Part shown: piece by piece, positions 13,238 to 35,884 of the stretch | How positions within the stretch are numbered: position 1 is the first letter of the stretch | Layout of the letters: each line of letters opens with the position of its first letter | Source of the DNA: Amoebophrya sp. A120 | Lineage: Eukaryota; Protista; Dinoflagellata | Direction: 5' to 3' | Assembly: GCA_905178155.1 (NCBI GenBank) | Contig: CAJINV010000022.1 | Span: forward strand, 641,073-705,072 | Length of the DNA stretch: 64,000 nucleotides | The notes under the pieces: generated by a model | Database searches by the model: none | Seen by the model: only the letters and a program-made list of their open reading frames with translations | Told to the model about the DNA's origin: nothing | Position numbers and translations under genes: made by a program

Positions 13238-16200
13238 ATGGCAGTACAACATAAAAATTCTTCGACAGGAGCTGCCGCGAAGCTTCTTCGCAGTAGAACA
13301 AACGGGCTGCTCTTCTTCAGCTCCTTGTGCGTGGTCACAATGCAGTTACTATGGCCGGTACTGTATCAAATGTAAAAATGTCTGGGTCTGGAAGAATGCA
13401 ACTTGTGATGCTGTATTTGGATTCCAAAAAAATCTGTATTGCATGAGTAGCAAACAGAATGCAATTTTTGCTACGCTGAGAAGGCATTTGTCATGCGGAA
13501 TAGGCATCAAGAAGCCCTCAAAAAATCTGTATTGCTAGTGTATGCATCACAGACATCATGGCTCATGCCAAACGTGCATGACAAGTGTCAGAATCTTCCA
13601 GACCCAGACATTTTTACATTTGATATACTGGCCCGCGCGGCCAGTGGTGGGGGAAGTAACACCGCAAGCAGTAGTTCCTCCTCGTCCGCCGGGAGCACAG
13701 CTACATATCAAATGCAAATATGTCTGGGTCCTCTGGAAGATTGGCATGTTTGTCATGCATATTTTGTATGATGGATGATGCCTGTAATGCATGATCTAGC
13801 AACACAGATTTTTAGAAGGCTTCCGAATGCCTATTCCGCATGAGAAATTGCCTCTCCGCCTAACTACACAAACTGGACTGCTGTTGCTGGTCGCGCAATA
13901 CAGGTGTTTTTGGAATTTTGGAATCCAATGACAGCATCACAACTTGCAACCTGCCAGACCCAAAAATGTTTGCAATGCATAGCACAGGTGATGCTGCCGC
14001 TCCACCTCCCGCTCCACCATCTCCTGCGGGCGGTAGATTTTCCACCGCTACACTGAACCAAGCACTGTCAGAAATTGAAACTGAAACGGATCATGTTGAG
14101 AACAACGGAGTTCGTGGAGTAGAGATGCGTACTAGCGAAGCAGCCCCGTCGACGAAGACCCATGAAAATGTTGAAGATCCAGAAGTTATTTCTTCATCCG
14201 TCGTCGTGGCAACCGAAACTGCGCGTGATGCAAGAGGATCAACGGACGAATTTAGTAGTACCCTGGTGGCTCCTTCCCCGGCGCCGGACTACACGGCCGG
14301 CTTTCGTACACGTTCACACGCTATCAAATGCAAAAGTGTCTGGGTCTGGAAACTTGTGATGCAAGGAAGGGAATAGTGATAACACTGTAATGCGCTGCCC
14401 AGCATGACAAGTTTTGCCGTGGTTCTGAGTTGCGTTTCGCATGAGAAACAGGGTTTTTGCATGACAGGCAAGAGCAGCTCTTCGCGGCCGCGCAATACAG
14501 AGTTCGGAGTCATGCCAGACTAGCATGACAAAGCTCGGAATCTTCCAGACCCAGACATTTTTGCAGTTGATACTCACGGGATTTTTGGCCCCTCGGTGGC
14601 AGAGCGTCCGCGTCGTAGAAGAGCCTCCGAAAAAAACCAGCTTTCTTCAAAACATGGAATGGATTAAGAAATATGGGGGCTTTGAAAAACTCCAAGCCAT
14701 CGGTCGTGACCTAGAAGGCGCAGCAGCAGAAGTACGACACCAAGCGCCCCCCGCCGGTCATCCTTCATCTTCCAGTAACTTTTCTGGGACGCCAGCACAC
14801 GACGAGGAGCACGATGGAGCGGAAGAGCTTGCACTATCCTGAGGAAAAACGAGGCCCACACGACCCCAGTGTCTCAAGATGGGAATTTTGCATAGACAGT
14901 TCCTGAAATTTTGTGAGTCACGGATGATAGGTTTGGCTCTGTACGTAGTGTAGCCGTGCCCAGCTAGTAGTTGTCCAGACGCATTATAATTACAGATCCA
15001 ATCTGTTCATGCTAATTAGCGCATGACAGATTCCCAAAACTCATGAAAAATAAGCGCCCCTCATGGAGAATATCCGCATGAGAAACAACATCGTCCTTAG
15101 CATGCAGAACCCTTGTAAGTACTAACACTGCGGTCGTGGGGACATCATTCTTCCACAGGATAAAAGCTAAGAAATAACGACGATCCTGGCATGACTCCCG
15201 CTGGGACGTCGAGTGGCCTCATGTTCATGGCACAACAACTTCCGCTGGTAGCCTCGGGGCCGTTCCGCACTTCCTGCATTGGTTTTCCCTTGATGCGGCT
15301 GCAGGCAGCAGAATTATCGGTAGTAGAGCCCCCGGATCGACGCCCGATTCCTTTTCTCGACAACATGCGTTTCTTTAACCAGTATTGCTATTGGTTGAAA
15401 AAATTTCAAGCCACTGCTCGTCGCCCACAATTAGAAGACGCCACCGAGGGCCACGCCGCTTCAGCTTTCGGCGGAACGTCGAGGGAAGATGATCGCGGAA
15501 CAAACAGGCCTCCACGTGCTCCCCAAGTACAACTAGTCCCTGCTTTTAGAGGAGGAGCTGCACCACCGCAAATTCTTTCGCTTTTCCCAGCTAGGACAGC
15601 AGAAGGTCCCGCTCTGAAGATCGTTACCGTGGGCGGCAACGTTATCACAAGAATCCCGTATTACGAATGGAAAAATACCAAAGCTCGCCACGTGCTCGAC
15701 AGGCTCTCCGGTGCGGACTCGTATCCAGCGCCACATGATATGCTCGCCAGCCCTGGGACCGGCCCGCAGCTTTTTACAGCTCATGGTCCTACTCCGGTCG
15801 TGCGTATCGGTACTGCTGCAAATCGCGACGAAAAGTTGGCAACGTTACTTGAGAAAGAGCTGCAGCAGCTGGTGCAATATCATCAGCAAAGCGCTTCTTC
15901 GTCTGCTGACACGACGACACTTCCGCCCCGAGCAAGGACCACCATCGACCTCGTCTTTGTCGCGGGCGGGCGAAAGATGCCCTTTGCCTCGCTTCTGAAC
16001 GTCCTTATGGCGTTCTCAACTGTTACATTCTCAGCTGTTACATGATTTGTCATGCAAATTTGCCACCAAGATCGCCACGATTTAGCTGCTTCGCATGACA
16101 AATATCCGAAGGGCTAAACAGCATCTAACTCCGTGCCAAATTTGTAATGCAAAAGGCGCAATCTTCCCCCTTTCACTTTCGCCGTTCTTGCATTACAAAT

Positions 16201-17331
16201 TCATGTAACAGTTGAGAATGTAACATTTGAGAACGCCATAATCCTTCGACCGAAGATATACGGTGGCCCCTACCTGGAGGAGCGCAAGTCCGCGAATATT
16301 GTCCACCTACCGTCCTTGGCGCAAAGCGAAATGGAAAAACTTTTCCAGCACCTGCGAAAAACTATTGCCTCGGACGAAGGGTTCGTGCCCGGGAAACTAG
16401 AGCACGACGTGCTGGCCTTTACGCACGCACTTGCGTCATCAGAGCGCGCATTTTTAAGGGGACCACAGCCAGAAGGTACTTCTTTGGAAGGCGATTATCC
16501 ACTGCTTTTGGAGCACTTCACGCACAGGTTACGCTGTCTTAACCATGACGCCGACGGAGCGGTTGTTGAGTCACCTTGGGTGCAACTAGCTACCCCTGAC
16601 ATGTCCCGCTGGCTGCTGACAGAGGTGGAAAAGGCTTTCGCCTTGGCCCGGCATCAAACGCCGAGAAGAATTCAACAAGAGTACAATACCTTTCTCAAAT
16701 ACGGCATACCCAACGCCAGCGTCTTATTTTGGCATTGGTGGACAGGGCGACTTTCCGCACGGATGGGGCCCTCTGTCACTCTGCTCGCTCGTGGTATTCT
16801 GATAGACCTAAGCGACGCCACTTCAGTGCCATTCCTTCCGGACGACGCACGCGAGACGCTCCGCACTGGGGGTGTAGTGGAAATGGAGTTGATCTACGTG
16901 GCCGACGGGGAACGCGGCGAAGGGGAACCTGTCCGAGAAATCAAATACAGGTTTAGCATAAAAAAAGACGTCACATCTTCACCCGATCCGCTGGCGCAGC
17001 CGCAACACGTATCAAATGCAAAAATGTCTGGGTCTGGAAGAATGCATATTTGTCATGCTTCTCGGGTGTGACTCTTACATCTGTCATGCACGTTACCCAC
17101 GAGCCCCCTTTTTCTGGCATGCAGAAACGCAGTTTGTCATGCAGAGTAGGCAACACCTAGAAGCTCAAAAACTTGTCATGCCGGGCCAGCACTTGTGGCC
17201 TTCTCATGATACGCCGCCCAGCATCACAAATTTCCAGACCCAGACATATTTGCATTTGATAACACGGCTCTTTCCAAATCGATTTTGATGTTTTCCCATT
17301 TCTCTGTGCAGCAGTTCCTGAGCAGCCTTAA
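13238..17331 (+). CDS. Hypothetical protein with N-terminal hydrophobic segment and an internal repeat; 6 introners
   Basis: ORF pieces from 13238, 13918, 14525, 15191 and 16316 join after removing inserts 13364-13625, 13706-13981, 14322-14572, 14835-15162, 16006-16240 and 17010-17261; stop TAA at 17329-17331. Two junctions have degenerate TSDs, so their exact boundaries are uncertain. Confidence 0.7.
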
Positions 17332-18619: not shown

Positions 18620-21365
18620 TGTAAGGAGCCCCAAACGCCTGCGCCCAAGGGCCCCCGTAAGGCCCCCCTCCTTGCGGGCCCACCCTGTATGGCATGCCCT
18701 GCAGCCCTGCTGGACAGTGCCCAATCGCGGGCGCCGGAAGGGCTCTGCTGAATGCTTTGGCATTTTTATAATATTGGCAAGCCGGGCCCATACGAAAAGC
18801 CCCAGGCGGCCCCCCTCTAGGAACATAAAGAGGACCCGCCCAAGAGGCCCCCGAGAGGCCCCCCGAGAGGCCCCCCCCCGAGGCCCCCCCTGCGGCCCCC
18901 CCCTGAGGCCCCCCCCGGAGGCCTTCCCTTGGGCCGCCCCTGTGGCCCCCCCTTTGGCCAACCCGACGTGGCCCTCGCTCCCTGACCTTCTGCCCTGAAG
19001 CTTGCTTCCTTTATTCTATTTGAGGGCCCGCCAAGCCTTTGCGCCGGCAAACGCCTGAGCCTGCCTCAGGGCCCCCGTAAGGCCCCCCTCCTTTCGGGCC
19101 CGCCCTTTATGGCATGCCCAGCGGCCCTGCTGGACAGTGCCCAGTCGCGGGCGCCGGAAGGGTTCTGCTGAATGCTTTGGCACTTTTAGAATATTGGCAC
19201 GCCGGGCCCATCCGGAAAACCCCAGTCGGCCCCCCTCTAGGAACACCCTAAAGACCCGCCCAAGAGGCCCCCCGGAGGCCCTCCCTAAGGCCCCCCCTTT
19301 GGCCAACCCGGCCCCCCTGATGCCCCGCCTTTGGGCAGCCCGGCGTGGCCCTCGCTCCCTCGGGCCTTCTGCCCTGAAGCTTTGCTTGAGGGCCAAGCCC
19401 CTGCGCCGGCAAACGCCTGCGCCGGAGGGCCCCCGTAAAGCCCCCCTCCTTTCGGGCCCACCCTGTGTGGCATGCCCTGCAGCCCTCCCGGACAGTGCCC
19501 AATCGCGGGCGCCTGAGAGTCTCTGCTGAATGCTTTGGCATTTTTAGAATATTGGCAAGCCGGGCCCATCCGGAAAACCCCAGGCGGCCCCCCTCTAGGA
19601 ACACCCCAAAGACCCGCCCAAGAGGCCCCCGGGAGGCCCCCCCTGAGGCCCCCCCTGAGGCCCCCCCTAAGGCCCCCCCTAAGGCCCCCCCTGAGGCCCC
19701 CCCTGAGGCCCCCCCCTGAGGCCCCCCCTGAGACCTTCCCTTGGGCCGCCCCTGAGGCCCGCCCCCCCTTTGGCCAACCGAACCCGGCGTGGCCCTCGCT
19801 CCCTGACCTTCTGCCCTGAGGCTTTAGTCTACTTGAGGGCCAAGCCCTTGCGCCGGCAAACGCCTGCGCCCGAGGACCCCCGTACGGCCCCCCTCCTTTC
19901 GGGCCCGCCCTGTAAGTATGGCATGCCCTGCGGCCCTACTGGACAGTGCCCAGTCGCGGGCGCCGGAGAGGTTCCGCGGAATGCTTTGGCATTTTTAGAA
20001 TATTAGCAAGCCGGGCCCATCCGGAAAGCCCCAGTCGGCCCCCCTCTAGGAACACCCTAAAGACCCGTCCAAGAGGCCCCGCAGAGGCCCCCCCGGACGG
20101 AGGCCCCCCCCGCGGCCCCCCTGATGCCCCTCCTTTGGCCACCCCGGCGTGGCCCTCGCTCCCTCGGGCCTGCTGCCCTGAAGCTTTGCTTGAGGGCCAA
20201 GCCCTTGCGCCGGCATGCGCCTGAGCCTGAGGGCCCCCATAGTGCCCCCCTCCTTTCGGGCCCACCCTGTATGGCATGCCCTGCAGCCCTACTGGACAGG
20301 GCCAAGTCGCGGGCGCCGGGGAGGTTCTGCTGAATGCTTTGGCATTTTTAGAATATTGGCAAGCCGGGCCCATCCGGAAAACCCCAGGCGGCCCCCCTCG
20401 AGGAACACCCTAAAGACCCGCCCCAGAGGCCCCCCCCTGCGGCCCCCCCTAGGGCCCCCCCTAAGGCCCCCCTAAAGCCCTTCCTGAGGCCCCCCCGATG
20501 CCCCCGCCCCCTTTGGCACACCCGGCGTGGCCCTCGCTCCCTCGGGCCTTCTGCCCTGAAGCTTACTGTCTTTGCTTGAGGGCCAAGCCCTTGCGCCGGC
20601 AAAGAAATGCCTGAGCCTTTGGGCCCCCGCAGAGCCCCACTCCTTTCGGGCCCACCCTGTATGGCATGCCCTGCGGCCCTATTGGATAGTGCCCAGTCGC
20701 GGGCGCCGGAGAGGTTCTTCGGGGCGAGTGCTTTGCTGGCGCGCATTTTCATAATATTGGCAAGCCGGGCCCATCCGGAAAACCCCAGGCGGCCCCCCTC
20801 GAGGCACACCCTAAAGACCCGCCCTGGAGGCCCCCCCCGGGGCCCCTCCTAAGGCCCCCTCTGTGGCAAACCCGGCGTGGCCCTCGCTCCCTCGGGCCTT
20901 CTGCCCTGAAGCTTTGCCTGAGGGCCAAGCCTGCCCTTGCGCCGGCAAATGCCTGAGCCTGATTGAGGGACCCCGTAAGGCCCCCCTCCTTTAGGGCCCG
21001 CCCTTTATGGCATGCCCCGCAGCCCTACTGGACAGCGCCCAGTCGCGGGCGCCCGAAGGGTCCTGCTTGATGATTTGGCATTTTTAGAATATTGGCACGC
21101 CGGGCCCATCCGGAAAACCCCAGGCGGCCCCCCTCTAGGAACGCCCGCCCTAAAGACCCGCCCAAGAGGCCCCTCAGAGGCCCCCCCCCTTGGGATCCCC
21201 CGAAGGCCCCCAATGGGCCCCCCCCGGCGGCCCCGCCTCAGGCCCCCCCTTCACTCCCCCTTTGGCCAACCCGGCATGGCCCTTGCTCCCACGGGCCTTC
21301 TGCCCTGAAGCTTTTCTTGAGGGCCAAGCCCTTGCGCCGGCAAATTCCCGAGCGAGCCTGAGGCC
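18620..21365. repeat. About 7 tandem copies of a ~335-450 bp GC-rich unit containing a variable (CTGAGGCCCCCC)n microsatellite
   Basis: Marker GGCATTTTTAGAATATTGGCAAGCCGGGCCCATCCGGAAAACCCC recurs near 18770, 19190, 19550, 20000, 20350, 20755 and 21090. Confidence 0.9.
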
Positions 21366-23088
21366 CCCCGGTACGGCCCCCCCCCTGGAAGAAGCCGCAG
21401 GAGGGCCCGCCGGCCGGGCCAAGAACCCGGACAACCAATATTCCTCTTCAATTCCCCCCTCCGTCACAGCCGAGGCGCAGCCCGCCCGCAAGCATTCAAA
21501 AACCTAGCCGGGGCCTTTTCTCAGGGAGGCTGCCTGGTCGCTGGAATGAGCCCCGAAAGGGGCAAGGAACGAAAGGGAGCCGACGAGGTCGAACAACCAA
21601 CCTGGGGGGGCTCTCCTGCTTCCAGTCGGGCCCCGGCCAGTCCAGTCGTGGACCCGACCAGCGTCGGGCGCGTCAACAACTGCAGCCCCCACGCCCCGGG
21701 GGTGTGTTGGGTGTCGAAATAAGGCCAGCCCGCCGCAGTGCGAACACAAAACCCCGGCGAAGTTCTGCGCCGCAGCATTCTCGCACTTGCCCCATCGGGG
21801 GGCCCTGTTTGTTTCGTCCGCGTATTTTTCCGGCGTGCAGGTGCCCATGATCAGCGGAGCCGCTTCGCAGTGCTGTTTTGTTAGTTTACCCGGCACCGGA
21901 AACGGCGCCGCGCCTTGCTTGAGCCTTCGGGCTGCCACATTTCTGCTGCGCTTCCCTCCGCTGTGCAGGTGTCCGGAGGCCTTTTGGCTTCTTCAGAGCT
22001 GGCAGGCAGCTGCCCTGTCTGTATCCGCGGCGCCTTGCTTTCTGTCTACAGCTGCTGCCCCTACCACTTTTCTTAGAGCTTTGCGCTGATCTTCTGGCGC
22101 GCTACTCTTCCCTAACGCTTGCTACCCCTGCCCCACCCGTCCCCCTTCCCAGAAAGCCCAGCCCAACACTCCTAATGATCATTTTATTGAATGCGAAAAA
22201 ATCAAGCTCAAGAAAGGGTCGCCCTTCAGGGCGACCCGTCTTCTTGTACAAATAAGATTTGTCTTGCTGGAGAGGAATGCAGCCCCATACTAAGCCTAAG
22301 TAGAGAGGTTCTGGGTCTGGCCTAGGCGTCTAGCATGAGAAACGTCCGCGCTGTAGGCCCATCAGCATCACAAACCGCCTGCACAATGCTGCGGAGCTTG
22401 TGGAGTTGCCTTCTTGCAAGACAGACGTGATTTGAGGTCTCAAATCAGCAACACAAATTTCCGGAAACATACCGTTTCGATATGGGGAGGGGGGATTTTT
22501 CCTCTCAATACATGGGCTGCATCGGTGGAGTCGTTGCGCGAGCGGGGTAGGGGTTAGGGGTTTTTTATATCGGATATAAAAAAATCTAGATTTTGATTCG
22601 AAAATTCGCCCTGCGGATGAACATGAGCAGCTGCCGCGACGACTAGAAGTAAAACGAAAATTATACGATAAAACAAGATGAGCAGCGTTTTCGTAAGTGT
22701 ATGATTCTTTACTCTATTTGGAGATGAGGTTTTGATGCAACATCTTTCTTTCAAAGCAGGAATAACTATGGCACTCATATTCGTGAAAATGGATTTATTT
22801 TACTTATATCCAGCTTGCGGCGGATGCGATAAAGTTGTAAACGATCCGGCATCCTTACCTCCACGGATGAACTTACCTTTCAAACACAAATGCTAATTTT
22901 GTTGCGCAGAAATCGCTTTCATCGGCCCCTAACAGTATGCGAAGGCGAGCTGGGGGGCTATGCGCGAGGAAGGGGGGAGGAGTTTGCTCTTCACAAAAAT
23001 CTTTATTTTGACGCAAAAAATTCCATTTATGCTGTGGAACACGATGAAAAACGGCAGGAACGACTAGGACTATACGGAAAGATGTTCA

Positions 23089-23238
23089 TATAACAGGAGC
23101 AGCTATTAAATCGATTGAAATTTTCAAAAATTTGTTCTATTATAAATATGCATGTCAAAACCACTTAGTTTATGGTTAATTAGCTAGCTGATAGTTAAGG
23201 TAAAGTAGCTAGTTGTCTTGCGGCTGTGTCTCGGAACG
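23089..23238 (+). repeat. Left terminal inverted repeat of the 11.7-kb element
   Basis: Reverse complement of 34678-34827 in two conserved blocks; contains TTGTCTTGC at 23213-23221. Confidence 0.9.
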
Positions 23239-23612
23239 CCGCGCGGAGTCGTTGATGAAGTAGTTCCGGCGGCCATTTTGCTGATTCTACTGACAACAAT
23301 CCTCAAAGAAATCTGACAACAGCTAAATCCTAAACCCTTCGGTGCCTAGAGTGGTACATTTGTGAATTGATTTTCGGTATGGCAGAGCGGTACGAAATTC
23401 GGAACAAATGTAGGCTACTTCTGGTCATGTGAAGCTCTTATGGGACCTGTTTTGATTGAGATTCTGGCACAACTTTGCAGGGCATATACGTTTCTAGAAC
23501 CGGACCCCGGATCCCTTCTAGTAGCGTGCGAGTTTTTGGTTGTCGAGTCAGTGTCTTAGAACGTCTTCTCCTCACATTTGCACGAACATCTTCCGACTTC
23601 TCCTCTCTCAGG

Positions 23613-24509
23613 ATGGAGTTTGATCCGAAAGCTATCGAGCGCGCATCTGTACAAGAAATCAAAAGGCTGTTGGAAGATTCTTTCGAGATTGTTATGATTT
23701 TCGAGACCGGATGCGATTTTTTCATAGCGCCGCTTCCGCATATCAGGGCGGAGCTGGGCATCACTCAGAAATGGTATCTCGGCATCCAGCTGAAGAGCAC
23801 CCGCACGATGTCCGCCGCCTGGCAGCGCAAACTGCGGTATGTTCTGAATCATTACAAGAACTTGTACCACGGAACCGTTCTGCTTGGCTGGGCCAACGAT
23901 TGTATGGACGTCTTCGTGCAGCCGGTGCATCGTGTGACGAACTACACCAAGTTCGACATCTGCGACGGTCTGTACAATCGCAACACAGTCATCAAGCGGC
24001 TGACGGATCTTTGGCAGAACCCGGTGTGTACCCGCCATACGGATACGATGGCGCTGTTGTCCTCCTACTCGCAGGCGACCTTAACGGAGAAAACTGCCCG
24101 CCGTATGTTCCTGGATTTGGTTGCTGGAAGTGATTTCGTGTATGCCCCCGCGGAGCGGGAGTTTGACAAAATTGACGGGCACATTTGGTGCAAGCAGGAT
24201 CCGCTCAAGAAGTATCGGGTGCAGGAGAAGGTCCTTTGCCTTCGTAAGGAGCGCGGGCTCGCTATCGGACTGCGCTGCAACTTCCACCGCAACTCCAAAG
24301 GACCGTACCACACCACCGACGCCGATTTCCTGCTTCTCCACGCTCGCTCGGGAGAAACTTCGGGGCAGTTTCTGGGCCTGCATGGATCCGCCCTGATCCC
24401 GTTTTCCACACTGCAGGAACACGGCTACACCGCCGACGAGACGACGTACATAAGAGCTTCATGGTTTTTGATTAGCGAATTTGCTGTTTTAGCCGGTAGG
24501 TGCGAGTGA
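23613..24509 (+). CDS. Intronless putative endonuclease with two tandem PD-(D/E)XK-like domains (298 aa from the ATG at 23613)
   Basis: Motifs E...CDFFI...GIQLKST and EK...DKIDG...RVQEKVL...YHTTDADFLLLH...LIPFSTLQEHGY fit the restriction-endonuclease fold. The ATG follows a pyrimidine tract plus AG (CTTCTCCTCTCTCAG|G-ATG). Family assignment is by motif recognition only. Confidence 0.65.
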   Translation: MEFDPKAIERASVQEIKRLLEDSFEIVMIFETGCDFFIAPLPHIRAELGITQKWYLGIQLKSTRTMSAAWQRKLRYVLNHYKNLYHGTVLLGWANDCMDVFVQPVHRVTNYTKFDICDGLYNRNTVIKRLTDLWQNPVCTRHTDTMALLSSYSQATLTEKTARRMFLDLVAGSDFVYAPAEREFDKIDGHIWCKQDPLKKYRVQEKVLCLRKERGLAIGLRCNFHRNSKGPYHTTDADFLLLHARSGETSGQFLGLHGSALIPFSTLQEHGYTADETTYIRASWFLISEFAVLAGRCE

Positions 24510-25415
24510 GAATATAGGCAACATAGTACTAATCGTTTTTATTCTAGAAACCAAGAAACGAATCACAAACGGAACCTCAACAGCGGACAACCGGGGAAGA
24601 AGACGATCAACTTCTATCCAGACGCACCCGGAGTCGGGCACCCCCGTCGCGACGGTGCGCTTGAGAAGTCGTATTGTAAGTGTGACGATCGCGAAGCTTA
24701 CACGCAACACCTGCTGAACATTTTGAAGAAGCACATCGATGAAGACATGTGATCCACTTCGTCCTGTAGCTCGCGGACTAACTGATCGCACAAAATTACG
24801 AGGACGAACGAATACTACAACCCGGAGAACACAAAAAGGCGCAGACACTGACAACGACATACGTTTTTGATTCAATTTGCATAGATAAAAGAACTGGTTC
24901 GTACAAGCAGAGAAACGCATCATAATGCATCCAAGTTTAAATTTCTCCTCTACGGAAGGGCGCCAGATGGGAGCTTTCTAGTAAAGCAAATTCGTCGTGG
25001 AGGTTCTATATTATGTGATTTCTTATATCATAAAAGAGCATGATAAATCCATGGTTTGTCTTTCAAACATAAATAAAATTCTCTTTTGCATAGTGTTGAC
25101 GTTAAGCAGCTTCCACAGCTGCAGACTGGGTTTCTGTGCAGGTGTATTAAACCTTCATAAAGAAGAAGCGTACTACTTTTCATTTTTTCATAATCTAATT
25201 TTGCATCATTCCACGTTGGGATGCTTGGAGAAGTGCTGTAAAAGTGCTCTTTCGAGTTTTTTCTAACAAGAACATTCAAAATTGATGAAACTAAACGTGC
25301 CGATGGTCTCAAGTTTCCCTAGCTTTATTCTCATGTAGTGGGCAAAGAGCTGATAACTCTGGAGACGCAAGTTTGTGTCTGTAGCGTTGATTTCATAACC
25401 AGAGTGTGTCTCATT

Positions 25416-28400
25416 CTACTTTCCATTTGCACCGCTAGAACTGGAAGCACCACCCGCCTTCTGCTGCATGTGGGGCGGCAGTCCGTGTTCGTAGTAGACC
25501 CCTTCAAACCACATCGGGTGGTTATATCCCATATCCCCAGCATTGTCTTTCGGCTCTTCGTCCGGCTCGACCTTTTCGTCGTCCTCCTCCTAGTTGGAAG
25601 TGAAGGTGAGGTTGGAATTAGATTTTTGCATGACAATCTGTATGATGTGGAAGCTGCAACGCATAACCGCATGACATACGCATGACAATCTCTGTAAAGA
25701 AACAAAATGCAAACTGTAAGAAAGCACAATATCGCTGTACCTTATCATCACCCTCAGTTCCCACCTTGTCGAACCAGTCCTTCCCCCGCCGCGTTCCCTT
25801 TTTGAGTTCGGGAAGCAGGGCATTTTCGAAGGCCTTGGCGGGAATCGGTAAACTGACGTTCGCTTCTGTGCCCGCGTTCGGATCGGAGCGGCAAATCTGC
25901 ATTGACTGCGCCTGCAAGTCGAACTCCGCAATCACGAAGGGGAGTAATTCCAGCATGATCCTGTTTTCCAGATTCCCCGACGTTCCACACTCCGGCGCGA
26001 GCTTCACTTTCACCGGCGCATACCCATTGGACCAGAACTGTAGGTTTTTATTTGGAAAATGTGACGAGGGAGAACGAGGTGGATTATGCAATACAAATTT
26101 ACGCGTCACGGCATGATGCGGTGGAAGTTTACACGAGCTAGACATTCACTAGAACAAACAGTACCAGTCTCATGGTCGGCAGCTTTTGACCAGCCTGATT
26201 ACGGTGCGAACGAAACTGCGCCACTTCCGCCACCGGGTTGGTTTTCGACACTGTGTAGACGAAGATGGCTGGGTGGCGCTCCAGGTTTTCCTGCATCGTG
26301 GTGTGAATACCCGGCGGCCGACCCAGGTTGGGTTGCGGCGTAAGCTTGCGCTTCTTGGTTCTGTCCATCTTAGTGTTAGCGAGAGCTGCGCTGCCCTGCA
26401 CGATCCGCTCCTCCTCCTGCATCGCGATGCGGTACGCCTCCCGGCACTTATCGGCGGTAGCAGTCCCGTAGACCATGTGGTGGAAGAGGATGTGACGGTT
26501 CTCCTTGGACAGCTCCGGAATGGCCTTCAGCAAGACCTTGTACACGCGCGTGAGCGGCGTAAACAACGCCATCTGCTTTTCCAGCGAAAGGGACGAAAAG
26601 CAGTCCACCAGAGTCGTATCAGCACGGATCCACAAATCGTCGAGGAGAACGATTTCCGTCCGTTTACAGATGTCCATGGACTGCCTGCGCAGAATCCTAC
26701 CGTCGTACAGATTCAGGTCGTTCAACAATCCGCCAGTTTTTTTGAAATCCCCCTCCGAAATCGGCATGGAGAACACGTTCACGTCGTACCGATTCAGCTC
26801 GAGACCCTGGTACCGCCCCATCTTCACCGCGATGACGCGCTCCATGGTGGGTGTACATTCATCGGGTGTTTTCTTGTGGTATCCGATGACCCAGTAGTTC
26901 GGGTTCTCCTCGAGAAATTTTTCCAGCTCACGCTCGTTGAAGGCCATCTGCCCGACGTACGCCAAAGCGTTGTAGTGATCTATGGAAAAAATATCTCCTC
27001 GAGTCTATCATGCTAAAAGCAGTAGTGCAGACATACTCCCTGACAGCAATAGGACTACGTTTGTCATGCGTCGCGATGTATGTGTAGTGTGTCTATATGC
27101 AGTCGAAGCTGTGATAAAAGAATCCTCTTCATGCGAATTATCTGCACGACTGTTTTTTGCAAGATAGCATGACCCTCTTCGCGTCCACGGCACGAAAGCC
27201 AGAGTCATGCCCGGACATCGAGACGAACTCGGGATCACCGGTGCAGTCGATGACGGACTGGATTTTCTTGTCGTTTTGGGTTTGGTTTTGCCACATGTTG
27301 GTAGCGACCCCCTTCATCTGTTTGTACAGCTGGTTGAGTTTTGTCCCTCTTCCGCCCCCGACACGACGCTCCTCGTCCTGATCCAGCAGTAGTGTGTGGA
27401 AATCATCCTTCGTCGGATTTTCGTGTGTAGCAGTGGTGATACTCAGGACAGAGTCTATTTCCCTCGGCGACAGCAGCGGCAGCTTCGTCACATCGCGGAC
27501 ATGCGGAGCCGGGTAGTAGCGCGCACCCTGCTCCATGTGGCGCTGGCGATCCACCTGGCGGGAGATGAGGGTCTGGTCCGCACGCGGCTTTTTGTTCTGC
27601 GCCGGATTTTGCTCCCTGTGCTGCTTCTCCTGCCAGACCTCGGTGACGGTAATTGTGCGGCACCGGTTCGTGCAGTACGGCTGCAGGTACTTGAGCGTGT
27701 CCACGCCGAGGTTGAAGATCTTGCACATTTGTTTCGCGGTGATGCTCAGCGGAAACGGGCACAAATCCCCCAGCAGCTTGCACGTGTTCTTGTTGAGGAG
27801 GATGTTGTGGTTCTGATAATCCTCCCAGAGGCCATATTGCGGGTCCCCAACTTCGAACCAGAAACAGTTCAGCGTGTTCCTGAGGACTTTGATGGCCGGA
27901 ATCTCGTACTCCTCGCCATAATGGTACACAGCGCAGGCGTCGCCGCACAGGCACCTCCACAACCGCTGCCGGTTCTTGGACATGTTGTCTTGGATCTTTT
28001 CTATGCAATTGAAATACTTTCTGCAAAGCCCATTGGTGCGCGCAAGCTTGCGTTGCTGGAACAGCAACGCAGGTTTCCATGTTTTTGCATGACAAACTCG
28101 ATGTATTCCAGCTGCTTGTTTGCAATCCCATCGGCGAGAAGAAGTCTTTCAATGGATAGCAGCAGTTCCCAGTGAGGTGGCGTTGGAAGTGCAGGGGTCG
28201 ATAAACCGCTTGTACGTGCACAGATAGTCGCCACCAATCAGCGACACATCGTGACGGCCCGTATGCTCGAGGTGGAAGAACAGCTCGTTGAGGCGGACGG
28301 TGGACGCGACGACCTGGCCGTGGACTTTCATCATCTTATCCTCCGAAATATGCAATAGAAAACAATGCCTCTGTTGAAGCATAAAACGTAGCTCATCGCA

Positions 28401-31225
28401 GTGAAACTCAGTGTCGTCCTGTGCTGAGAAATACTATGTAGATGCAGCACACTCTACAAAAAATGCATGACAGATTACGTGCCTATCAATAGCAGGGACA
28501 TTATTTTCAAACTCATATATCGACAACAGCTCCCGCAACATCTCCGGATGATAACCCAGCCACCCCTTCGTTTTCTTCAAATCCTCCAACTGCACCAGCG
28601 GGTCCGGCTTCTCGATGAATTTCACCCCGTTTTTCAGCAAGAACTTCTCGATTTCTTCCTCGGATTTTTTTATGACGAATTCACCGGCGGCTTGTTTTTT
28701 TTTGCGCTCGGCCTCGCGGAGGGCGCAGTCGTTCAAACTGAACGCAAAACGCCACTTCCACTTCTGAAAAGTGCGGCGGACGAGGTCCGCTCCCTGGAAC
28801 CGGGACTGCGTGCAGTGGAAAATGTTGGGTCCTGGAATGTTATGTAGCATGCGGATTAGCAATGATTTTATAGCTGAAAAGGAGGTCGTTTGAGGAGGTC
28901 CCTAGAGGACCTCCTAAATTGTGCAGCTTTGTCATGCAAAAAAAAATTGAATCTGCATGGTATGATGCGATTTGGAGACCTCCCTAGAGGACCTCCCAGA
29001 AGGACCAAAGAGCATTCGTCCTCAGCGATCGTCTTCAGAGAGTAGTTTTTCTTGACAAAATTAAACAAAGAGATTACAAAACCAAACAACAATACGGCTC
29101 TCCAGCGCCAACACCAGGGTGGGTTTGTCAGCTTCCGCTTTCACTTCCTTCGCAAACTCGCGTTTTGCGCACTTTTCCGGTTCCTTCTTAGCTTCCCGCT
29201 GGAGCTGCTTGTCGATCTCGAAAAAATCAGCTGCATTTTGCCCGCGACCCGCCGGTCCCGTCGCCCAGTCCGATACCATCACGCCGAAGCTCTCGACCAG
29301 TGGGACGCAGTTCAGCGTGTTTCGGTGGAGCCGATGGAGGATTGGCATCGCCCAGGTTCCCTCGATCATGCGCGTGGTGGACTGCACATGGCGGGTTTCG
29401 GGACTGCCTTGATCGAGGAGTTGATGCACGATCATGACATACTCCCGTTGCTCCGGGCACATGATGCTGGACACGTCCACATCCCGCCACGGAACGTCTT
29501 TATCCTGGATTGCGGCTTTGACGGCATCTACACCGAACTTGACGATCAGCTGGGACATCATGTACGCGGTGAGAAACTGGCTCTTCGTCTGTTCGACATC
29601 GGATGACAACAGCGACGAGTTTCCGGCCTGGATCGGAGCGGGTTCGATAACCAAATCGGTCCACGGCTCGCGGTCTCCATTTTTGTAGTCCTTTGGTCCC
29701 GGAGACTGTCTTGCACGGTACGAGAACTGTGTATTTTTGGTGGAGGTTCCGCTGCAGAAGAATGCTATGCACGATGGGCTCATAGTAGTTTTGATTTGTC
29801 CTGCAGAGTCCCGTGGTGGATAATCTTATTCACGATGGTGCTGCACATGCAAAGAAAGCGACTTTTCACACTGAAATCCTAAGTCATGTAGTACCAGTCC
29901 TCCCTGCCCGGCTTGCTTCCGCTGTACGGCTCCGTCAAAGTTGAAGCAAACGTGCGGCGGCTTTGCTCCGATTTCGTGGTCGTTGAAGAACTTGGAAAGC
30001 AATTCGGACTTCTTGTTGTGCTTATTCTGTGCCCACAAACGGCCCAGGACTCCGTACTCCAGTTTATGCAATGAAAGCCAGTACCCAGCATCAGTTTCTT
30101 GTTGGATTTTGTATTATCGTCAGCATTACAAATCTGTCTGCTATCAACTAGAAGCACGACGCTGTGTACTTGATTTCAGTATGGATACAGGTATCTGCGC
30201 GCGCCGGCGCACTGTTAGCATCGTGTATAATGTTATTCTGCATGGTATGCTTTTGCATTACATATTCGCTCTCAATGCCATGCAGGATAACATTATACCC
30301 GATGCTATCACTGCGGTCAAATTGTAGCTATCCGAAGGGAAAACAGCCAGTATGTGGAATACCTTGGCGCGGTAATTGCAGTCGTCTGCGCCCATCCGAC
30401 CCAGCTTCTTGCAGGCGGCGTCCTTCAGAGCATCGTATGTGAACTGCAGATTGTTGATGTTGACGCCCATCAGGGTCTGATTGAAGTCGCTCGTTCCGAA
30501 TTTCGCATGTACTTGAATAGGGTCTTTCTCCATCCGCCACCACAAATAACAGTTTACCTGCGTATTCGCGTGTATCTCGCTCATTCGAAAATTCATTATT
30601 TTCTGATGCAGAAAACGCATGATATGCAGTGTGTCATGCATAAAGAATCAAACCTGTACCACATCCTCGGAATCCACGTTGTCGACGAGGATCGGCTTGA
30701 TCCTCACCTGGATCTTGAACAGTAGATCCCGTGGAACTTGCTCTTCAGCCCAGTATTTGTAACTACCGGGAGACGGCGCCATCGACTTCAAACAGTACTT
30801 GGAGTGTATGCACGGAAGAAAAAATAGTTTTAGGGTTAAGGTTTTGCTCCAAACTGATTTCTGGATGCCTCGGAGAAATAAATGACTTGTCAGAATTCAA
30901 ATTCTGAAATCAGTTTGGGACAAAACCTTAACCCTAAACTCATTTTTCGCATCGTATGGCCTCCGGTGAAAGGACACCTCACCGGCTTGTCCCAGAAGGT
31001 GGTCTTGCTTTTGTGTCCCGGTCTGACGTAGTCCTCGTCTGGGTCGCTACCGTCATCGTCGGTATCAGTGTCAAATGCGAACCACGCAGCATCCTTCTTC
31101 TTCTGTCCAATCGGCGAAGGGAGTTCCGACTTCTTCTTCGCGGGAGAAGAAGCGAGAAGAGACGGAGATTCCTCCATCTTGGGCGCTCTGTACGGCGTAT
31201 GATTGTCCTCGTAACCACTCGGCAT
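25416..31225 (-). CDS. Large multi-exon protein (well over 1000 aa) containing a divergent pogo/Tc1-mariner (DDE_1-like) DDD transposase core
   Basis: GC3-rich exons matching ORFs 30890-31282, ~30654-30800, 30258-30641, 29826-30071, 29061-29783, 28434-28862, 28149-28382, 27138-28067, 26138-26965 and 25618-26145, plus last exon 25416-25589. Motifs PPHVCFNFDG (D 29934-29936), IAFFCSGT, VHQLLDQGS (D 29412-29414) and PNIFHCTQSRFQGADLVRRTFQKWK (D 28785-28787). In-frame GT-AG introns at 30558-30653, 28832-29095 and 25590-25740. Other junctions, the start codon and an in-frame TAA at 29826-29828 are unresolved. Confidence 0.65.
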
Positions 31226-31351
31226 CACGAGGTCATGTTCACTCACAAGTCGGTCAGTTTCTACGGGTGATTCACAAAACAAACTTCGAACTCAGCGTAG
31301 GGAGGCTGCGAGCGATGATACGACAAAGGTTTACTCCACTTCGCTCTACTG

Positions 31352-32222
31352 ATGCCATCAAGCGACCCCATCTACAGACGCAAACCGCTCACAAACCGAC
31401 ATCTTCGTGCTGGTATTGCACATACCACGTCTGCTACTGGCGAGTACGAACATCCACAGACCGAGTTTCTGACCTACGTGACCGATTTGCGTTGCAGAAC
31501 AACCACTTCAGACACGAGCCTTCACAGGAGCAACTTCAGCTGTTCTTCTTCTGATTTTTCAATACCAAATGATTAAGAGCATCTTCGTCACGGTGTGGAA
31601 AGTGCAGCTCTTTTCCGTCATGTTTACGAAGCTCCACCACTTCAAGGAGAAAATCATTGTTGACCGCCTAGTGTTAGTAAAGCGAACGATCTGCGCGGCC
31701 TACAGATCGACACTATTCGATGGGTGGAGAAGCAGGTAGTATTGGTGATTTGCTACAATATCAATGATGAGAACTTCATTTTGTGTATATAGAAACAAAT
31801 ATATATTTTTATATTCAAAACTGGGGTAGCCTCTGTGCAAATTGCTGGAGAAATACAACAACCTCCCCAGCTTAAAACTGATAATTGTTTTATCAACATA
31901 AAGCAGTAGAATAGAAAACGCTTCATAGCAAGTACGAAACTAACCCTATTCACAACTGCTGAAACATAGAAGGTCCGAGTTGCGATATCAAATGAAAAAA
32001 GCGCGCATCGCACTTGATCCATTGCTGCCAAAAGGGCCTCGCTCAAGTGCTGATCATGCCAATACGAACAGGGGCAAAGGCGTCTGTTCTCAACATACAA
32101 ACGGGTACTGCGATGTGCGCTATTTTCGCTTCGATATCACGCTCACGTGGACAAGGACCGACAGAGAATTTTTTACGAAGTACGACGCCCTACATTGGGC
32201 GACGCGAAGATTCACGTTCTAG
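31352..32222 (+). CDS. Possible small spliced ORF inside the element
   Basis: Coding-looking segments 31352-31576, ~31570-31737 and 31980-32222 separated by an AT-rich stretch; splice structure not resolved. Confidence 0.2.
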
Positions 32223-32237
32223 AAGCTAACCGAAGAA

Positions 32238-34543
32238 TTACTTCTTTTTCATCACTTTCATGGCCGGGGTCTTAGCAGCCTTCTTCGCGGCCGCGGCCGG
32301 CTTCTTAGCGGCCGCTTTCTTGGCCGCGGCCTCCGCCTTCTTAGCGTCCTTCTCGGCCTGCTTCTCCAACAAGGCCTTGACCTTCTCCTCGTCCTTCAGG
32401 CGCTTCGCCTCCGCCTTGGCCACCTTGTTGTTCTCCTTGGTCTGCTGCTTCTTGAACTCCTTGTTGGATTCCTCGATGTCCACGATCAACTTATCCTTCT
32501 TCTTGCTCAGGGACAACAGCAACGCGGCGGCGAACGGGGACTTCGCAGGAGCCGGGGTCAGGCCGGTGATGTCGTTGCCGAAGCTCAAGGGGGAGATGGG
32601 CTTGCTCAGAGGGGTGAACCCCAGGGTCTGCGGGGCAATCGACTTCTCGCCCAAGGACAGCTTGGCGGGCTTGACCGCAGTGGCGCTCACGATGGCGTGC
32701 CGCTCGGGGATGGACTGCATGGACGGAAAGTTGGACGGGGGCATGCCCGTGGAGGAGCCCGGCAAGCCGGTGGACGAGCCCGGCATTCCCTGATATTAAA
32801 GCATTGTGAAGTTCGAACGTGAGGTACTAGATGGACCGACGATCATGCTGCAGCTACACTTACATCAGGTGTTTCACATAAAACCAGTCACATCTTCAGA
32901 CAGCATTAGAATCAATTCCTGAAACATCGTATAGGTGGCGCTAAACTGTACCTGCATGTTCTGCATCGCCAGGTAGTACGCGGGGGACTGCATGGGGTTG
33001 GGCAAGCCGGTCATGGGGTTGGGCAAGCCGGTTCCGGGGACCATCTGCTGGACGATATCCAATACAAGCCTCTGCTTTGTAGTTTGTCATGCAAGACATG
33101 CATATATTCGATCTGGATGAGGTCGTTACTGAGCGCGATTATTGCGTTGTAAAAACGAACATGCACAAATGCCGAGGTTGCATTGGATACTACATCGGAG
33201 TCGGCATGACAGACGTCGGCGCGGGGCCACCCGCACCACCCGCACCGCCGTTACCGAAGTGGGTCGGGCGGGACAACCCGCAAAGGTGCGGCTTCGGGCA
33301 CTCGAACACGGCCTCAAACCACATGTCCTTGAGTATGCAAACAAAATCTTCAGCGAAGTCATGCTTGTCATGCAGAAACGAGCACTACAGAGCATGACAC
33401 TGGAATGCATATTATCAAGGGCTCAAGGCGTGAACTCTGCATGCAAAATACGGACCTACTGTGACTTCGCTGAAGGATGACGTGCATATTGGTGCCGGCC
33501 TTGGACAAGTACTCGACGGAATGCTGCAAGGTGCGGTACTTGCGGTCCGGATCACGGGGGATTAACTGATGAGTTTTACGTTGACATTGGAAACTGGACT
33601 CATGACGCACGTACCGATGTGCCGATATGTTCACACTTCTCTCGGATAAGAACAAAACGAAAAGTGCTACCATGTGGGGGTTGACACCCATCCGGACGTA
33701 CACCTCATTGACCTGGATGGCGTCGTAGATGCACTGCTTCACCTTCATGGGGCAACTCTCGGACAGGGTGGCAAAGAAGTCGGTCGAGATGTCGTGGCCG
33801 AAGAGGTACCAGCCTGTGATGATGAAGAGAGTTCATATTCATGATCGTATAGTTGTGTTTCATGTATGGTTTTCATGTCATGCAGGTGTAGAAACAATGG
33901 TCACAGTGATATACTCATTTGCTGAAGATCATGAACTACAAACTCAGTAACGAAAGCAACATACTACAGAAAAACTCTATACGGTCGATGTTTCCGGCCA
34001 GCGCCGCCTTCGAATAGGACAAGATCAACAGAAAGCCGATCTGCTTCGCGCGGAGAACGGTCTCGTACTCGGAAAGGGCGTCACGCATGGCGTTGACATC
34101 ACTCTGGTTGAAGCTGTTCACTTGTGCATTCAAGAATGCAGAGACAGTCTTTGGCATCTTCGACAACGACATTTTTGGTGTGATGCAAGAGTACTTGCAC
34201 AAGTTTGCAGTAAGGCAGAGTGAAGTCTTCACTTCGTAAAAAAACGGCTACGGGTTCGGTCAACAATGTCCAATGGTGGAAGATCAGCAACGACGCCCAA
34301 GATTAACAACAAGTCTTCAGGTGAAAGATCCGGAATCATTTTTTCAAACAGTTGGAATTGGGTTTCAACTTCACACTCAACTCTGCTGAAAGACAACACG
34401 CGGTGAGCTTGGGGATTGTGGAATTGTGTGAGGAACAGACAGGTAAAATCGTTTAGTTGGTTTGTGTTCGCAAATATGTTCTCAACTCTAGCACAGACAG
34501 TCGGGATTGCTTCGCGGTATTGATTGTCAAGCATTGAATTCAA
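32238..34543 (-). CDS. Multi-exon hypothetical protein with a Pro/Met-rich linker and a histone-H1/DVNP-like Lys/Ala-rich C-terminal tail
   Basis: Exons MSLSKMPK...AGNIDR, FIITGWYLFGHD...GVNPHM, RDPDRKYRTL..., ILKDMWFEAVFECPKPHLCG... and DIVQQMVPG...MQNMQ; last exon ends AAKKAAAKKPAAAAKKAAKTPAMKVMKKK-TAA at 32238. 5' end uncertain. Confidence 0.65.
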
Positions 34544-34677
34544 TTTTCTACAAAGCAGCTCATTCTTCTCATCTCTGTTTCACATCGCAACGCAGATCAC
34601 AACACAGCCTCAAAAACCTCTTCTCCACACCAGCATCTTCGCGAAGGGACCATGCAGCATAGCCTCGGCGGCCAAAC

Positions 34678-34827
34678 CGTTCCCAGACACAGCCGCAAGA
34701 CAACTAACCACATTAGCTATAAGAAAACCTAGATAGTTAATCATAAAATAGCTAGATAATCATAATAGTTTTACAATAAAACAGATTTTTGAAAATAGTT
34801 TTCGATTTAATAGCTGCTCCTGTTATA
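34678..34827 (-). repeat. Right terminal inverted repeat of the 11.7-kb element
   Basis: Contains GCAAGACAA at 34695-34703, the same 124-nt distance from the end as the motif on the left. Confidence 0.9.
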
Positions 34828-35884
34828 GTTCATGAAACTACATTATAGCTGCAGCCTGATCGAATAGCAATAAAGTGTATGATTCTTCGCATTACAATAC
34901 TTACGAATCCGGAGATGTTGAGAAGACGCAAAACGTCTTTCTTTGAACAAAGCAGCAACTCATTAGCACAACCCACGTCGACCCGGGAGAAATGAGTGTG
35001 GTCTACCCACAAACTACGAAATTCGTAGATGAAAAACCTTACATGTAGTTGCTGGAGTGGTTGAACAAAAATGTATGTATGTTTATATTCTGCAACTGCA
35101 CGTGCACCAATATTAACAACTGCAGACTTTACGACCGTTGGACAGTCTTGTTGTGGCTATGCCAGGCATAGAATTCGTTCTGTGCCTCTTCCAAGGCTTA
35201 AGACGGAAAGGGAAGGGGCGCCAGGGGCACCAGAAAATGGGTTTTCTAGCCTCGATCAACGTTGGCCACTAGAAGTCGACGTGTAGCCTGATTTCCAAAC
35301 AGTCGCACTATTGATACTCGAATCTTCTGTGTTCATCCTCCTCACGGGAATTATTTATTTTCCCGCTGAATTCTCGCTAAACAGCGGGTATTAAAGCTAA
35401 GGTATAACGGTAACCTAGACTTGTTCTGCTATATGATCACTCATTCTCTTTAGCTGCAGGCGTTTAATTTTTGTTCTTTTTTTGCAAGCGCCGGGCCGCT
35501 ACGATCATTTCCCACTTGTTGTGATCGACACACGCGGGTTTTTTTCCTTTCCAGCAGCGGGTCTTGATCTCTTTGTTGAGATAGAAAAAAGCTTCACCAC
35601 ATTGATATTCTCGCGCAAGCAGTGATGTCCGAGGCGCGTGCTTCATCCCGATGTTGATGCAGGACCAAGAAAAGTGTTGCGACTGCAGCAATGCTATCAT
35701 GAGTTCGGCGCCGACAGTACGGCGCAAAGGAAGCTTGACGACCTCCGAGCAAGATTTTTTGTTTCAATCCAAAACGACAGGTTTAGGAGTTTTTTTTCTA
35801 CCTGATGACACACATACACGACATACTTGAGCTCTTAGTACTATATACAAACAAACATTAGGCAACGACTCGAAGTTATCTTTG

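Follow-up and report, generated by a model that had tools for sequence, protein, structure and literature searches.

Which machinery spreads the introns of Amoebophrya sp. A120? The genome of this dinoflagellate carries about 30,000 repeated, mostly non-canonical introns that resemble miniature inverted-repeat transposable elements (MITEs). In its published description these introners are gene-free, 40–1000 nt long, and bounded by inverted repeats that start with TAT and by direct repeats of 3–5 nt; no transposase was found, and transposase-mediated spread was argued against or ruled out (Farhat et al. 2021, PMC7789003). The question is raised again by an 11.7-kb element lying at positions 23089–34827 of the stretch of DNA analysed here, a 64,000-nt segment (contig C22, 641073–705072, of a 115.5-Mb assembly whose contigs are labelled C1, C3, C6, C17 and so on) hereafter called the window. 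A first-pass annotation had singled this element out as a multigene transposon and a candidate that, itself or through a sibling of the same chemistry, would mobilize the short introners around it.

The answer reached here is that the element is very probably a full-length transposon of the autonomous, cut-and-paste type, belonging to a lineage found so far only in Amoebophrya and parental to at least one introner, and that its superfamily is the best candidate for the engine of the TAT-type introners. The core of the first-pass proposal, an autonomous-type transposon that could supply the introner chemistry itself or through a sibling, is supported as far as sequence can carry it. Coding elements with the same TAT termini and a 5-bp duplication change the picture of A120 as a genome without a transposase, and the unusual introns of Amoebophrya may well owe their spread to this element family, a strong candidate for the missing machinery.

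Ends and relatives of the 11.7-kb element

The element starts with TAT and ends with ATA. On the left, GTTCA is followed directly by TATAACAGGAGCAGCTATTAAATCGA; on the right, TCGATTTAATAGCTGCTCCTGTTATA is followed directly by GTTCA, the right end being the exact reverse complement of the left TATAACAGGAGCAGCTATTAAATCGA. The two arms of the terminal inverted repeat (TIR) match perfectly over their outermost 26 nt, and imperfect complementarity continues out to about 150 nt (86% between 23089–23146 and 34770–34827, 78% between 23166–23238 and 34678–34750). When re-read, the perfect and imperfect portions of the TIRs, the TAT...ATA termini and the 5-bp target-site duplication (TSD) were all as first annotated. 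The features of the two ends are:

23084–23088, no strand: left copy of the TSD, GTTCA (5 bp, perfect), from the boundary reading
23089–23238, + strand: left TIR arm, starting with TAT, its first 26 nt equal to those of the right arm
about 23115–23131, left arm: subterminal A/T-rich box, AACTATTTTCAAAAAT in the right arm and diverged to TTGAAATTTTCAAAAAT in the left, in register in the siblings
34678–34827, − strand: right TIR arm, from the comparison of the arms
34828–34832, no strand: right copy of the TSD, GTTCA, from the boundary reading

The sequence flanking the element shows no insertion into an open reading frame (ORF), so that this copy is not itself an intron. Directly upstream of the insertion site, which is AT-rich, GC content is very high (0.64–0.69 at 20000–22000).

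At the DNA level the interior of the element is single-copy in the genome. The ORF piece at 27141–28148 (− strand, 336 aa) has about ten diverged paralogues genome-wide, with 22–44% identity, and a profile of the element's nuclease gene, described below, finds about 20 loci. The ±10 kb around nine of the paralogues were fetched, and seven of them proved to lie within delimitable elements, which together with the window copy gives eight TIR-bounded elements with inverted repeats of 150–405 bp spaced 11.2–18.0 kb apart. All eight start with TAT and are flanked by perfect 5-bp TSDs (GTTCA, ATGCT, CTTTA, AGTCC, AAAGA, TTTGT, ACGCG and TATCG). Their 16 arms align without gaps: the start reads TAT(A/G)..., none of them deviates at positions T1, A2, T3 and A13, and at about positions 27–42 they have in common a box reading AACT...CAAAAAT. 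In three siblings the two arms are 98.5–99.3% identical. Siblings on C1 (13.08 Mb), C6 (2.20 Mb) and C17 (1.08 Mb) are regarded as young. Six-frame comparison shows that the delimited elements are collinear, with a gene order common to all. The search for further copies that the first-pass annotation had called for, run with the encoded proteins, has returned elements whose TSD, in every copy that was delimited, is 5 bp. The GTTCA repeat is no chance match, since a perfect 5-bp duplication is found in 8/8 delimited elements, in the element's own MITE and in 12/16 related MITEs (see below). Nor do the internal genes look like host genes lying outside any TIR pair, the same gene set being enclosed between TIRs at eight loci.

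None of the eight large elements lies inside a clear ORF, and their flanks are AT-rich, which fits selection against 12-kb insertions in exons. At two further paralogue loci that carry both transposase and nuclease (C3:10.757–10.764 Mb and C1:11.463–11.469 Mb), no TIR was found within the 20 kb fetched; these copies may have decayed or been truncated, or the elements may extend further.

Derived MITEs and restored reading frames

The tie between the 11.7-kb element and introners is a 284-bp MITE on contig C3 (G000:C3:10485361–10485644). Its arms are 96% (right-type) and 97% (left-type) identical to those of the element, and both types are kept in it, the element's two arms being only about 75% alike each other. 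The MITE is flanked by its own perfect 5-bp TSD, CTACG. The joining of the two arms, together with a TSD of its own, indicates that it is an internal-deletion derivative that transposed.

This MITE interrupts an ORF of at least 759 aa. Read through, it is full of stops. When the MITE and one copy of the TSD (289 nt) are removed, the frame is free of stops for 261 aa upstream and for 299 aa downstream, and the locus as a whole reads open for 759 aa; a frame as open as this has a probability of about 4e-9 of arising by chance. Removal of 3, 4, 6 or 7 extra bases instead gives only 22–56 aa. Either the MITE is removed from the mRNA as an intron made of the element plus one repeat, or the interrupted gene is dead, and by its effect on the frame the MITE appears to behave as an introner. 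The interrupted ORF has no Pfam match, and no homologue was detected within the allowed length range, probably because of that length limit. The implied 289-nt intron (MITE plus CTACG) has no obvious GT-AG boundaries.

Siblings have left short relatives as well. The terminal 44 nt of the 18-kb element on contig C17 recur at 89–98% identity in a family of about 252-bp MITEs with at least 247 first-look candidates. Among 16 copies of this family, 12 have a perfect 5-bp TSD and the remaining four match at 4/5 positions; in five of the 16, a frame of at least 80 aa on either side reappears when 5 extra nt are removed and at no other offset, and the control offsets yield one copy each. The arms of the C34 sibling recur at 90–100% identity in non-autonomous derivatives of about 760 bp to 1.3 kb at five sites. 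The short relatives with assigned positions are:

16006–16240, no strand: C17-type MITE, 235 bp, with termini resembling those of the 18-kb C17 element; once it and 5 nt are taken out, an ORF extends for at least 199 aa to either side
3248–3482, no strand: second C17-type MITE of the window, from the inverted-repeat search
G000 C3:10139189-10140515, C11:430767-431520, C8:1445494-1446262, C6:3109914-3110676 and C5:659231-659993: C34-type derivatives

The window as a whole contains 78 inverted-repeat pairs within 600 nt of each other, and a strict filter retains 11 short TAT...ATA elements with perfect 5-bp TSDs. The proposal that the element or a sibling could mobilize introners is supported in two respects, the element's own MITE within an ORF and the presence of C17 termini in MITEs of the window, and falls short in a third: beyond TAT, the TIR of the 11.7-kb element is unlike the introner families that abound in the window (A–G; the TATCAAATGTAAAAATG family and the TATCCTGAGTAAAAAC family), as the first-pass annotation had itself cautioned.

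What that annotation had described as a common grammar of the ends also comprised a 9-mer, TTGTCTTGC, located in the inner TIR block exactly 124 nt from each end. Its coordinates agree with that description:

23213–23221, + strand: 9-mer TTGTCTTGC, 124 nt from the left end
34695–34703, − strand: 9-mer TTGTCTTGC, 124 nt from the right end

Of this grammar, TAT and the 5-bp TSD are shared between the large elements and the introners, but the 9-mer is not a conserved end feature of the siblings, as it is missing from the arms of the C17, C6 and C14 elements. I considered it as a binding site for the transposase and rejected it, given its absence from these arms and from a 797-bp C17 derivative. 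Its general form, TTGTNWTGC (mostly TTGTCATGC), occurs 206 times in the window against 6.4 expected, about 30-fold (for example at 13403, 16047, 47612 and 57844, and in the interior of the element at 25628, 25680, 27061, 28087, 28929, 30123, 33084 and 33365). Inside short introners it keeps fixed distances from the ends, some 40 and 124 nt for a 262-bp family and 51 and about 145 nt for the 252-bp family, and putative introns of the transposase gene contain it too. The 9-mer is probably a module of intron bodies and may act as a signal for splicing or intron recognition.

A predicted transposase and its partner nuclease

The first-pass annotation had counted three to four encoded proteins, and three genes are indeed conserved across the siblings: gene A, a large intron-rich transposase gene (25621–30896, − strand, blocks B to E) and gene F. 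Gene A and the transposase gene lie on one strand, and gene F is convergent with them, near the opposite end. Codon-position GC agrees with the frames assigned as follows:

23613–24749, + strand: gene F, predicted tandem PD-(D/E)XK nuclease; main ORF to 24506, conserved part 24510–24749 after a putative short intron
23715 (D), 23787–23795 (Q-L-K), 24174 (D) and 24225–24230 (E-K), + strand: motifs of gene F, from the alignment
25621–27004, − strand: transposase block E, C-terminal conserved exons, from the sibling comparison
27141–28901, − strand: transposase block D, predicted helical insertion domain and helix with the invariant E-x-x-x-E (E codons 27639–27641 and 27627–27629)
27822–27824, − strand: E codon of the block D motif DPxYGLWE, from the alignment
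29064–30113, − strand: transposase block C, predicted RNase-H-like core with the invariant DQGSxExR; codon of the candidate second catalytic Asp at 29412–29414
30261–30896, − strand: transposase block B, beta-1 region; codon of the candidate first catalytic Asp at 30486–30488
32241–34579, − strand: gene A, function unassigned, a basic protein largely of low complexity; conserved block 33939–34247 common to the siblings

The long transposase exons of the window copy align to their homologues without frameshifts. Its in-frame stops, among them those at 28149 and 28434 in block D, fall within putative introns: they lie in unconserved stretches that bear the 9-mer and are most simply explained as intronic. 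Two compact hairpin elements (30208–30315 and 30820–30947, with arms of 41 and 47 nt that are 85–88% complementary) lie between conserved transposase exons, and to that extent the element's own introns look introner-like.

Among 1.84 billion representative proteins, 27 matched a profile made from block D. Of the 20 matches that were looked up, 17 are from Amoebophrya (strains A25 and AT5.2, with MMETSP transcripts of Ameob2 as cluster members) and three carry no organism label. The presence of these transcripts among the homologues implies that the transposase family is transcribed in at least one strain, Ameob2. A search for homologous proteins with the 581-aa transposase exon found nothing, probably because of its length window. 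The full-length product measures 1100–1650 aa. An AlphaFold (AF2) model of a 1133-aa member, built from a 33-row alignment (24 homologous proteins and nine exon translations), has a predicted local distance difference test score (pLDDT) of 76 and a predicted template modelling score of 0.74. Its core, at residues 80–230, is arranged beta-beta-beta-alpha-beta-alpha and is followed by a long helical region.

The nine best Foldseek matches of this model in the PDB are all Hermes, a hAT transposase. VIA, a search that does not depend on Foldseek, also placed Hermes at the top (Z 12.3 over 364 aligned residues); below it came ISCth4, retroviral integrases, TnsB, the P-element transposase, IstA, Tn5, Transib, Mu and Mos1; re-alignment to Hermes raised Z to as much as 14.6 (range 12.3–14.6 over 350–390 residues). 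Among the viral models of BFVD there was one credible match (probability 0.90, rank 2), a hAT-domain protein of Pandoravirus. Conserved acidic residues are found where a catalytic triad would be expected: D87 in beta-1 (14/15 rows, counted by alignment column), D208 directly after beta-4 (22/22 rows, motif DQGSxExR), and E589 and E593 in the helix that follows the insertion (26/26 rows each, motif PxxEKxxExQF). The aligned ranges place D64 of human immunodeficiency virus (HIV) integrase on D87 and E572 of Hermes near E593, D64 and E572 being catalytic residues of their enzymes. The glutamate of the triad would be E589 or E593, and the window copy retains the equivalents of all these candidates.

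Since the list of matches consists almost exclusively of transposases and integrases, and given the placement of the conserved acidic residues, I read the large protein as a DDE transposase with a predicted Hermes-like architecture, in which a large helical insertion interrupts the RNase-H-like core. The transposase-like protein of the first-pass annotation has accordingly gained a predicted fold of the DDE type with conserved D, D and E in the expected places. Two other readings were tried and rejected. In a pogo- or Tc1-mariner-like DDD reading, the W-x-D-x-D motif lies about 21 residues before the Asp of DQG, a distance that an RNase-H core does not allow, and the search by fold led to Hermes. 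An rve-integrase reading of 'HxxSDQGSPE' suffers from the same short spacing and has no rve match.

Gene F is the best conserved of the genes, with E-values down to 1e-65 between siblings, and has the same position and orientation in all eight delimited families. Its alignment contains two repeats of a nuclease motif, with an invariant D...Q-x-K in the first half (D45, Q63, K65) and an invariant D-G...Q-E-K in the second (D213, then QEK). In the AF2 model (pLDDT 70), the best counterparts of residues 173–363 are I-Ssp6803I, a homing endonuclease (Z 12.0), and MepB (Z 9.6), and residues 15–150 match the Holliday-junction resolvase Hjc (Z 8.1). By its predicted fold and its motifs the product of gene F is a tandem PD-(D/E)XK nuclease. 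Pfam gave only a sub-threshold hint of DUF4365, and TnsA is absent from the 50 best structure matches. A word-based protein search found relatives only in Amoebophrya AT5.2, two proteins, of which the nuclease-like g2353 is numbered next to the transposase-like g2354. The lineage of transposase plus nuclease thus appears, so far, in Amoebophrya strains only (A25, AT5.2 and Ameob2).

The long ORF pieces of the window and siblings, all scanned against Pfam, matched no meaningful family, and a search of the ESM Atlas was uninformative for the transposase exon and for gene A. The tail of gene A (32241–32795, − strand) is rich in Lys and Ala, with a GC content at third codon positions of 0.91; over the window gene and a sibling copy (L020:2539-4011) this value is 0.86–0.93, and both encode a low-complexity protein rich in Q, M and N with a Lys/Ala tail. 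The transposases of other strains likewise end in Lys/Ala-rich tails. The 18-kb C17 element has an additional uninterrupted ORF of 627 aa (L026:1893-3773), which is without a match in Pfam, is peculiar to that sibling and may be cargo or a fourth gene.

Competing explanations and known systems

How might such an element make introns? In the mechanism that I propose, the transposase would bind the arms through the TAT tip and the subterminal AACT...CAAAAAT box, excise the element and integrate it into a target whose two strands are cut 5 nt apart. The nuclease could make the second-strand cut, as TnsA does in Tn7, or open hairpin or cruciform intermediates, which a hAT-like enzyme and palindromic MITEs should both give rise to. 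Mobilization in trans would extend to short derivatives in which the ends are retained. Once such a MITE had landed in an exon, it would have to leave the transcript together with one copy of the TSD, which is the anatomy of an A120 introner. A bolder proposal, which I regard as a serious possibility rather than an expectation, is that these elements constitute a new superfamily of eukaryotic transposons, with a Hermes-like DDE enzyme, a 5-bp TSD, TAT termini and an obligatory tandem PD-(D/E)XK partner, and that this superfamily made the tens of thousands of introners of A120. If true, it would be a eukaryotic counterpart of the TnsA/TnsB two-nuclease design.

Several points weigh against the main account, that of an autonomous-type transposon behind the introners. 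Z scores of 12–14 can arise by chance for largely helical models, and the folds of both proteins rest on structures predicted from shallow alignments (33 and 8 rows). At the sequence level there is no match to transposase families in Pfam or the PDB, with single proteins or with profiles: six full-length transposases have no Pfam match at E≤0.01, and at E≤1 no transposase family recurs among the 33 alignment rows. The gene models of the 11.7-kb copy are predictions with many introns, and three RNA runs bearing the same species label gave zero reads on 23300–29299, a result rated as no test of expression or splicing. Only one MITE derives from the 11.7-kb copy, which may itself be inactive; beyond TAT its TIR does not match families A–G around it; and most of the 13 short elements of the window lie among exons too short to reveal whether their removal restores an ORF.

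Some of these points would also be met if the family had once been mobile and this copy were now a dead relic, present-day spread of introners proceeding through siblings or by another mechanism. Past the first 26 nt its arms are only about 76–86% alike, as against 98.5–99.3% in three siblings, the single MITE derived from it has diverged by 3–4%, and the lack of RNA reads, though no test, would fit. I nevertheless consider a relic rather unlikely. The asymmetry of the arms is inherited and not a product of decay, for the MITE keeps both distinct arms at 96–97%; the long conserved exons are free of frameshifts and retain every candidate catalytic residue, and the in-frame stops are confined to unconserved stretches bearing the intron 9-mer. 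Much less can be said for the idea that there is no transposon unit at all, and that host genes lie by chance between two MITE-like repeats of independent origin or that a virus-like element of the Polinton or virophage type has integrated. It would account for an interior that is single-copy at the DNA level, and the unexplained parts, gene A and the large protein's C-terminal domains, also speak for it; but the recurrence of one gene set between TIRs with perfect 5-bp TSDs at eight loci, the 284-bp MITE that joins exactly these two arms, the predicted transposase fold of the large protein, and Pfam scans without polymerase, capsid, packaging ATPase or rve integrase together make it hardly credible.

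A different objection concerns the class of the element. Among known structures Hermes clearly outscores all others, the only credible viral match is a hAT-domain protein, and the spacing of about 385 aa between the second Asp and the Glu is near that of hAT enzymes. One could therefore suppose a very divergent hAT member that carries the nuclease and gene A as passengers without a role in transposition, and that is connected to introners just as any MITE-spawning hAT would be. This is improbable in view of the TSD, which is 5 bp and not 8 bp in 8/8 elements and in the MITEs, of termini that read TAT... and not YARNG, and of the failure to detect either the dimerisation domain or the BED finger in any of the 33 members. 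The nuclease, moreover, does not look like a passenger: it is the best conserved gene, keeps its place and orientation in eight families, and adjoins the transposase-like gene in AT5.2. The reading preferred here is accordingly that of an autonomous-type transposon with a transposase and a nuclease as its conserved pair of enzymes, and its standing is best appreciated by comparison with systems already described.

With the published A120 introners (PMC7789003) the element shares inverted repeats that start with TAT and a short direct repeat, here of 5 nt, and its derived MITE interrupts an ORF as an element plus one repeat; it differs in being 11.7 kb long, coding, and itself no intron. Diverse TIR introners have since been reported from A120, most introner families being left unclassified (Gozashti et al. 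2025, PMC12130899). One of them, 'family 38', is a TIR-flanked, ORF-bearing introner whose Copia/Gypsy-like ORFs are described as homologous to integrase regions of long terminal repeat retrotransposons (PMC12130899). It resembles the present element in its host, its TIRs, its ORFs and its tie to intron gain. By its description it is integrase-like, whereas the proteins studied here have no rve or other Pfam match and a predicted Hermes-like fold. The first-pass annotation, which knew of no characterised autonomous partner of the introners, had thus missed a TIR-flanked, ORF-bearing family in A120, although that family is unlike this element. A literature search found no paper on the present transposase–nuclease pair, with overlap with the unclassified families of PMC12130899 being possible.

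These proteins make the spread of introners directly testable, with named enzymes, candidate binding sites and a donor MITE at hand, and they add to the catalogue of eukaryotic transposons a DDE lineage that is orphan in sequence and has an unusual conserved partner nuclease. The closest comparison for the transposase is with hAT elements and Hermes (PDB 8edg, 6dww and 4d1q): a predicted DDE core with a large all-helical insertion is common to both, as is the great distance that separates the Glu from the second Asp. Termini of hAT elements follow the YARNG rule, and their TIRs are short and their TSDs 8 bp. Here the TIRs are 150–405 bp long with TAT in all 16 arms, the TSD is 5 bp, the protein has twice the length, each element extends over 11–18 kb and includes a conserved partner nuclease, sequence similarity is not detectable, and neither the PF05699 dimerisation domain nor the BED finger was found. 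The element would therefore seem to work like a hAT-type cut-and-paste transposon and yet depart from hAT in TSD length, termini and signature domains.

In Tn7, TnsA, a PD-(D/E)XK nuclease, is encoded beside the DDE enzyme TnsB and makes the second-strand cut, and the TSD is 5 bp. The present element likewise appears, from predicted folds, to associate a DDE enzyme with a nuclease of the restriction-endonuclease fold and has a TSD of that length, and TnsB and TnsABCD structures are among the fold matches of its transposase (Z 6.6–7.3). Tn7, by contrast, is bacterial and its transposase is Mu/rve-like rather than Hermes-like; here a TnsC-like ATPase was looked for in vain, and the ends differ from TGT...ACA. 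The element may share the two-nuclease design of Tn7 but is probably no Tn7 relative. Transib and RAG1 also combine a 5-bp TSD with a DDE core that has an insertion domain, but HzTransib is a weak structural match (Z 6.4), there is no RAG1 match in Pfam, and the termini are TAT and not CACAATG-like. As for Ginger and other integrase-type TIR elements and Polinton/Maverick, no ORF or homologue has an rve, polymerase or capsid match in Pfam.

The relation between the large elements and their short derivatives is that of Ping and Pong to mPing: the 284-bp derivative keeps just the two arms of its parent, and other MITEs share termini of about 44 bp with a large sibling. What sets the Amoebophrya elements apart is that here the MITEs appear to serve as introns in coding exons.

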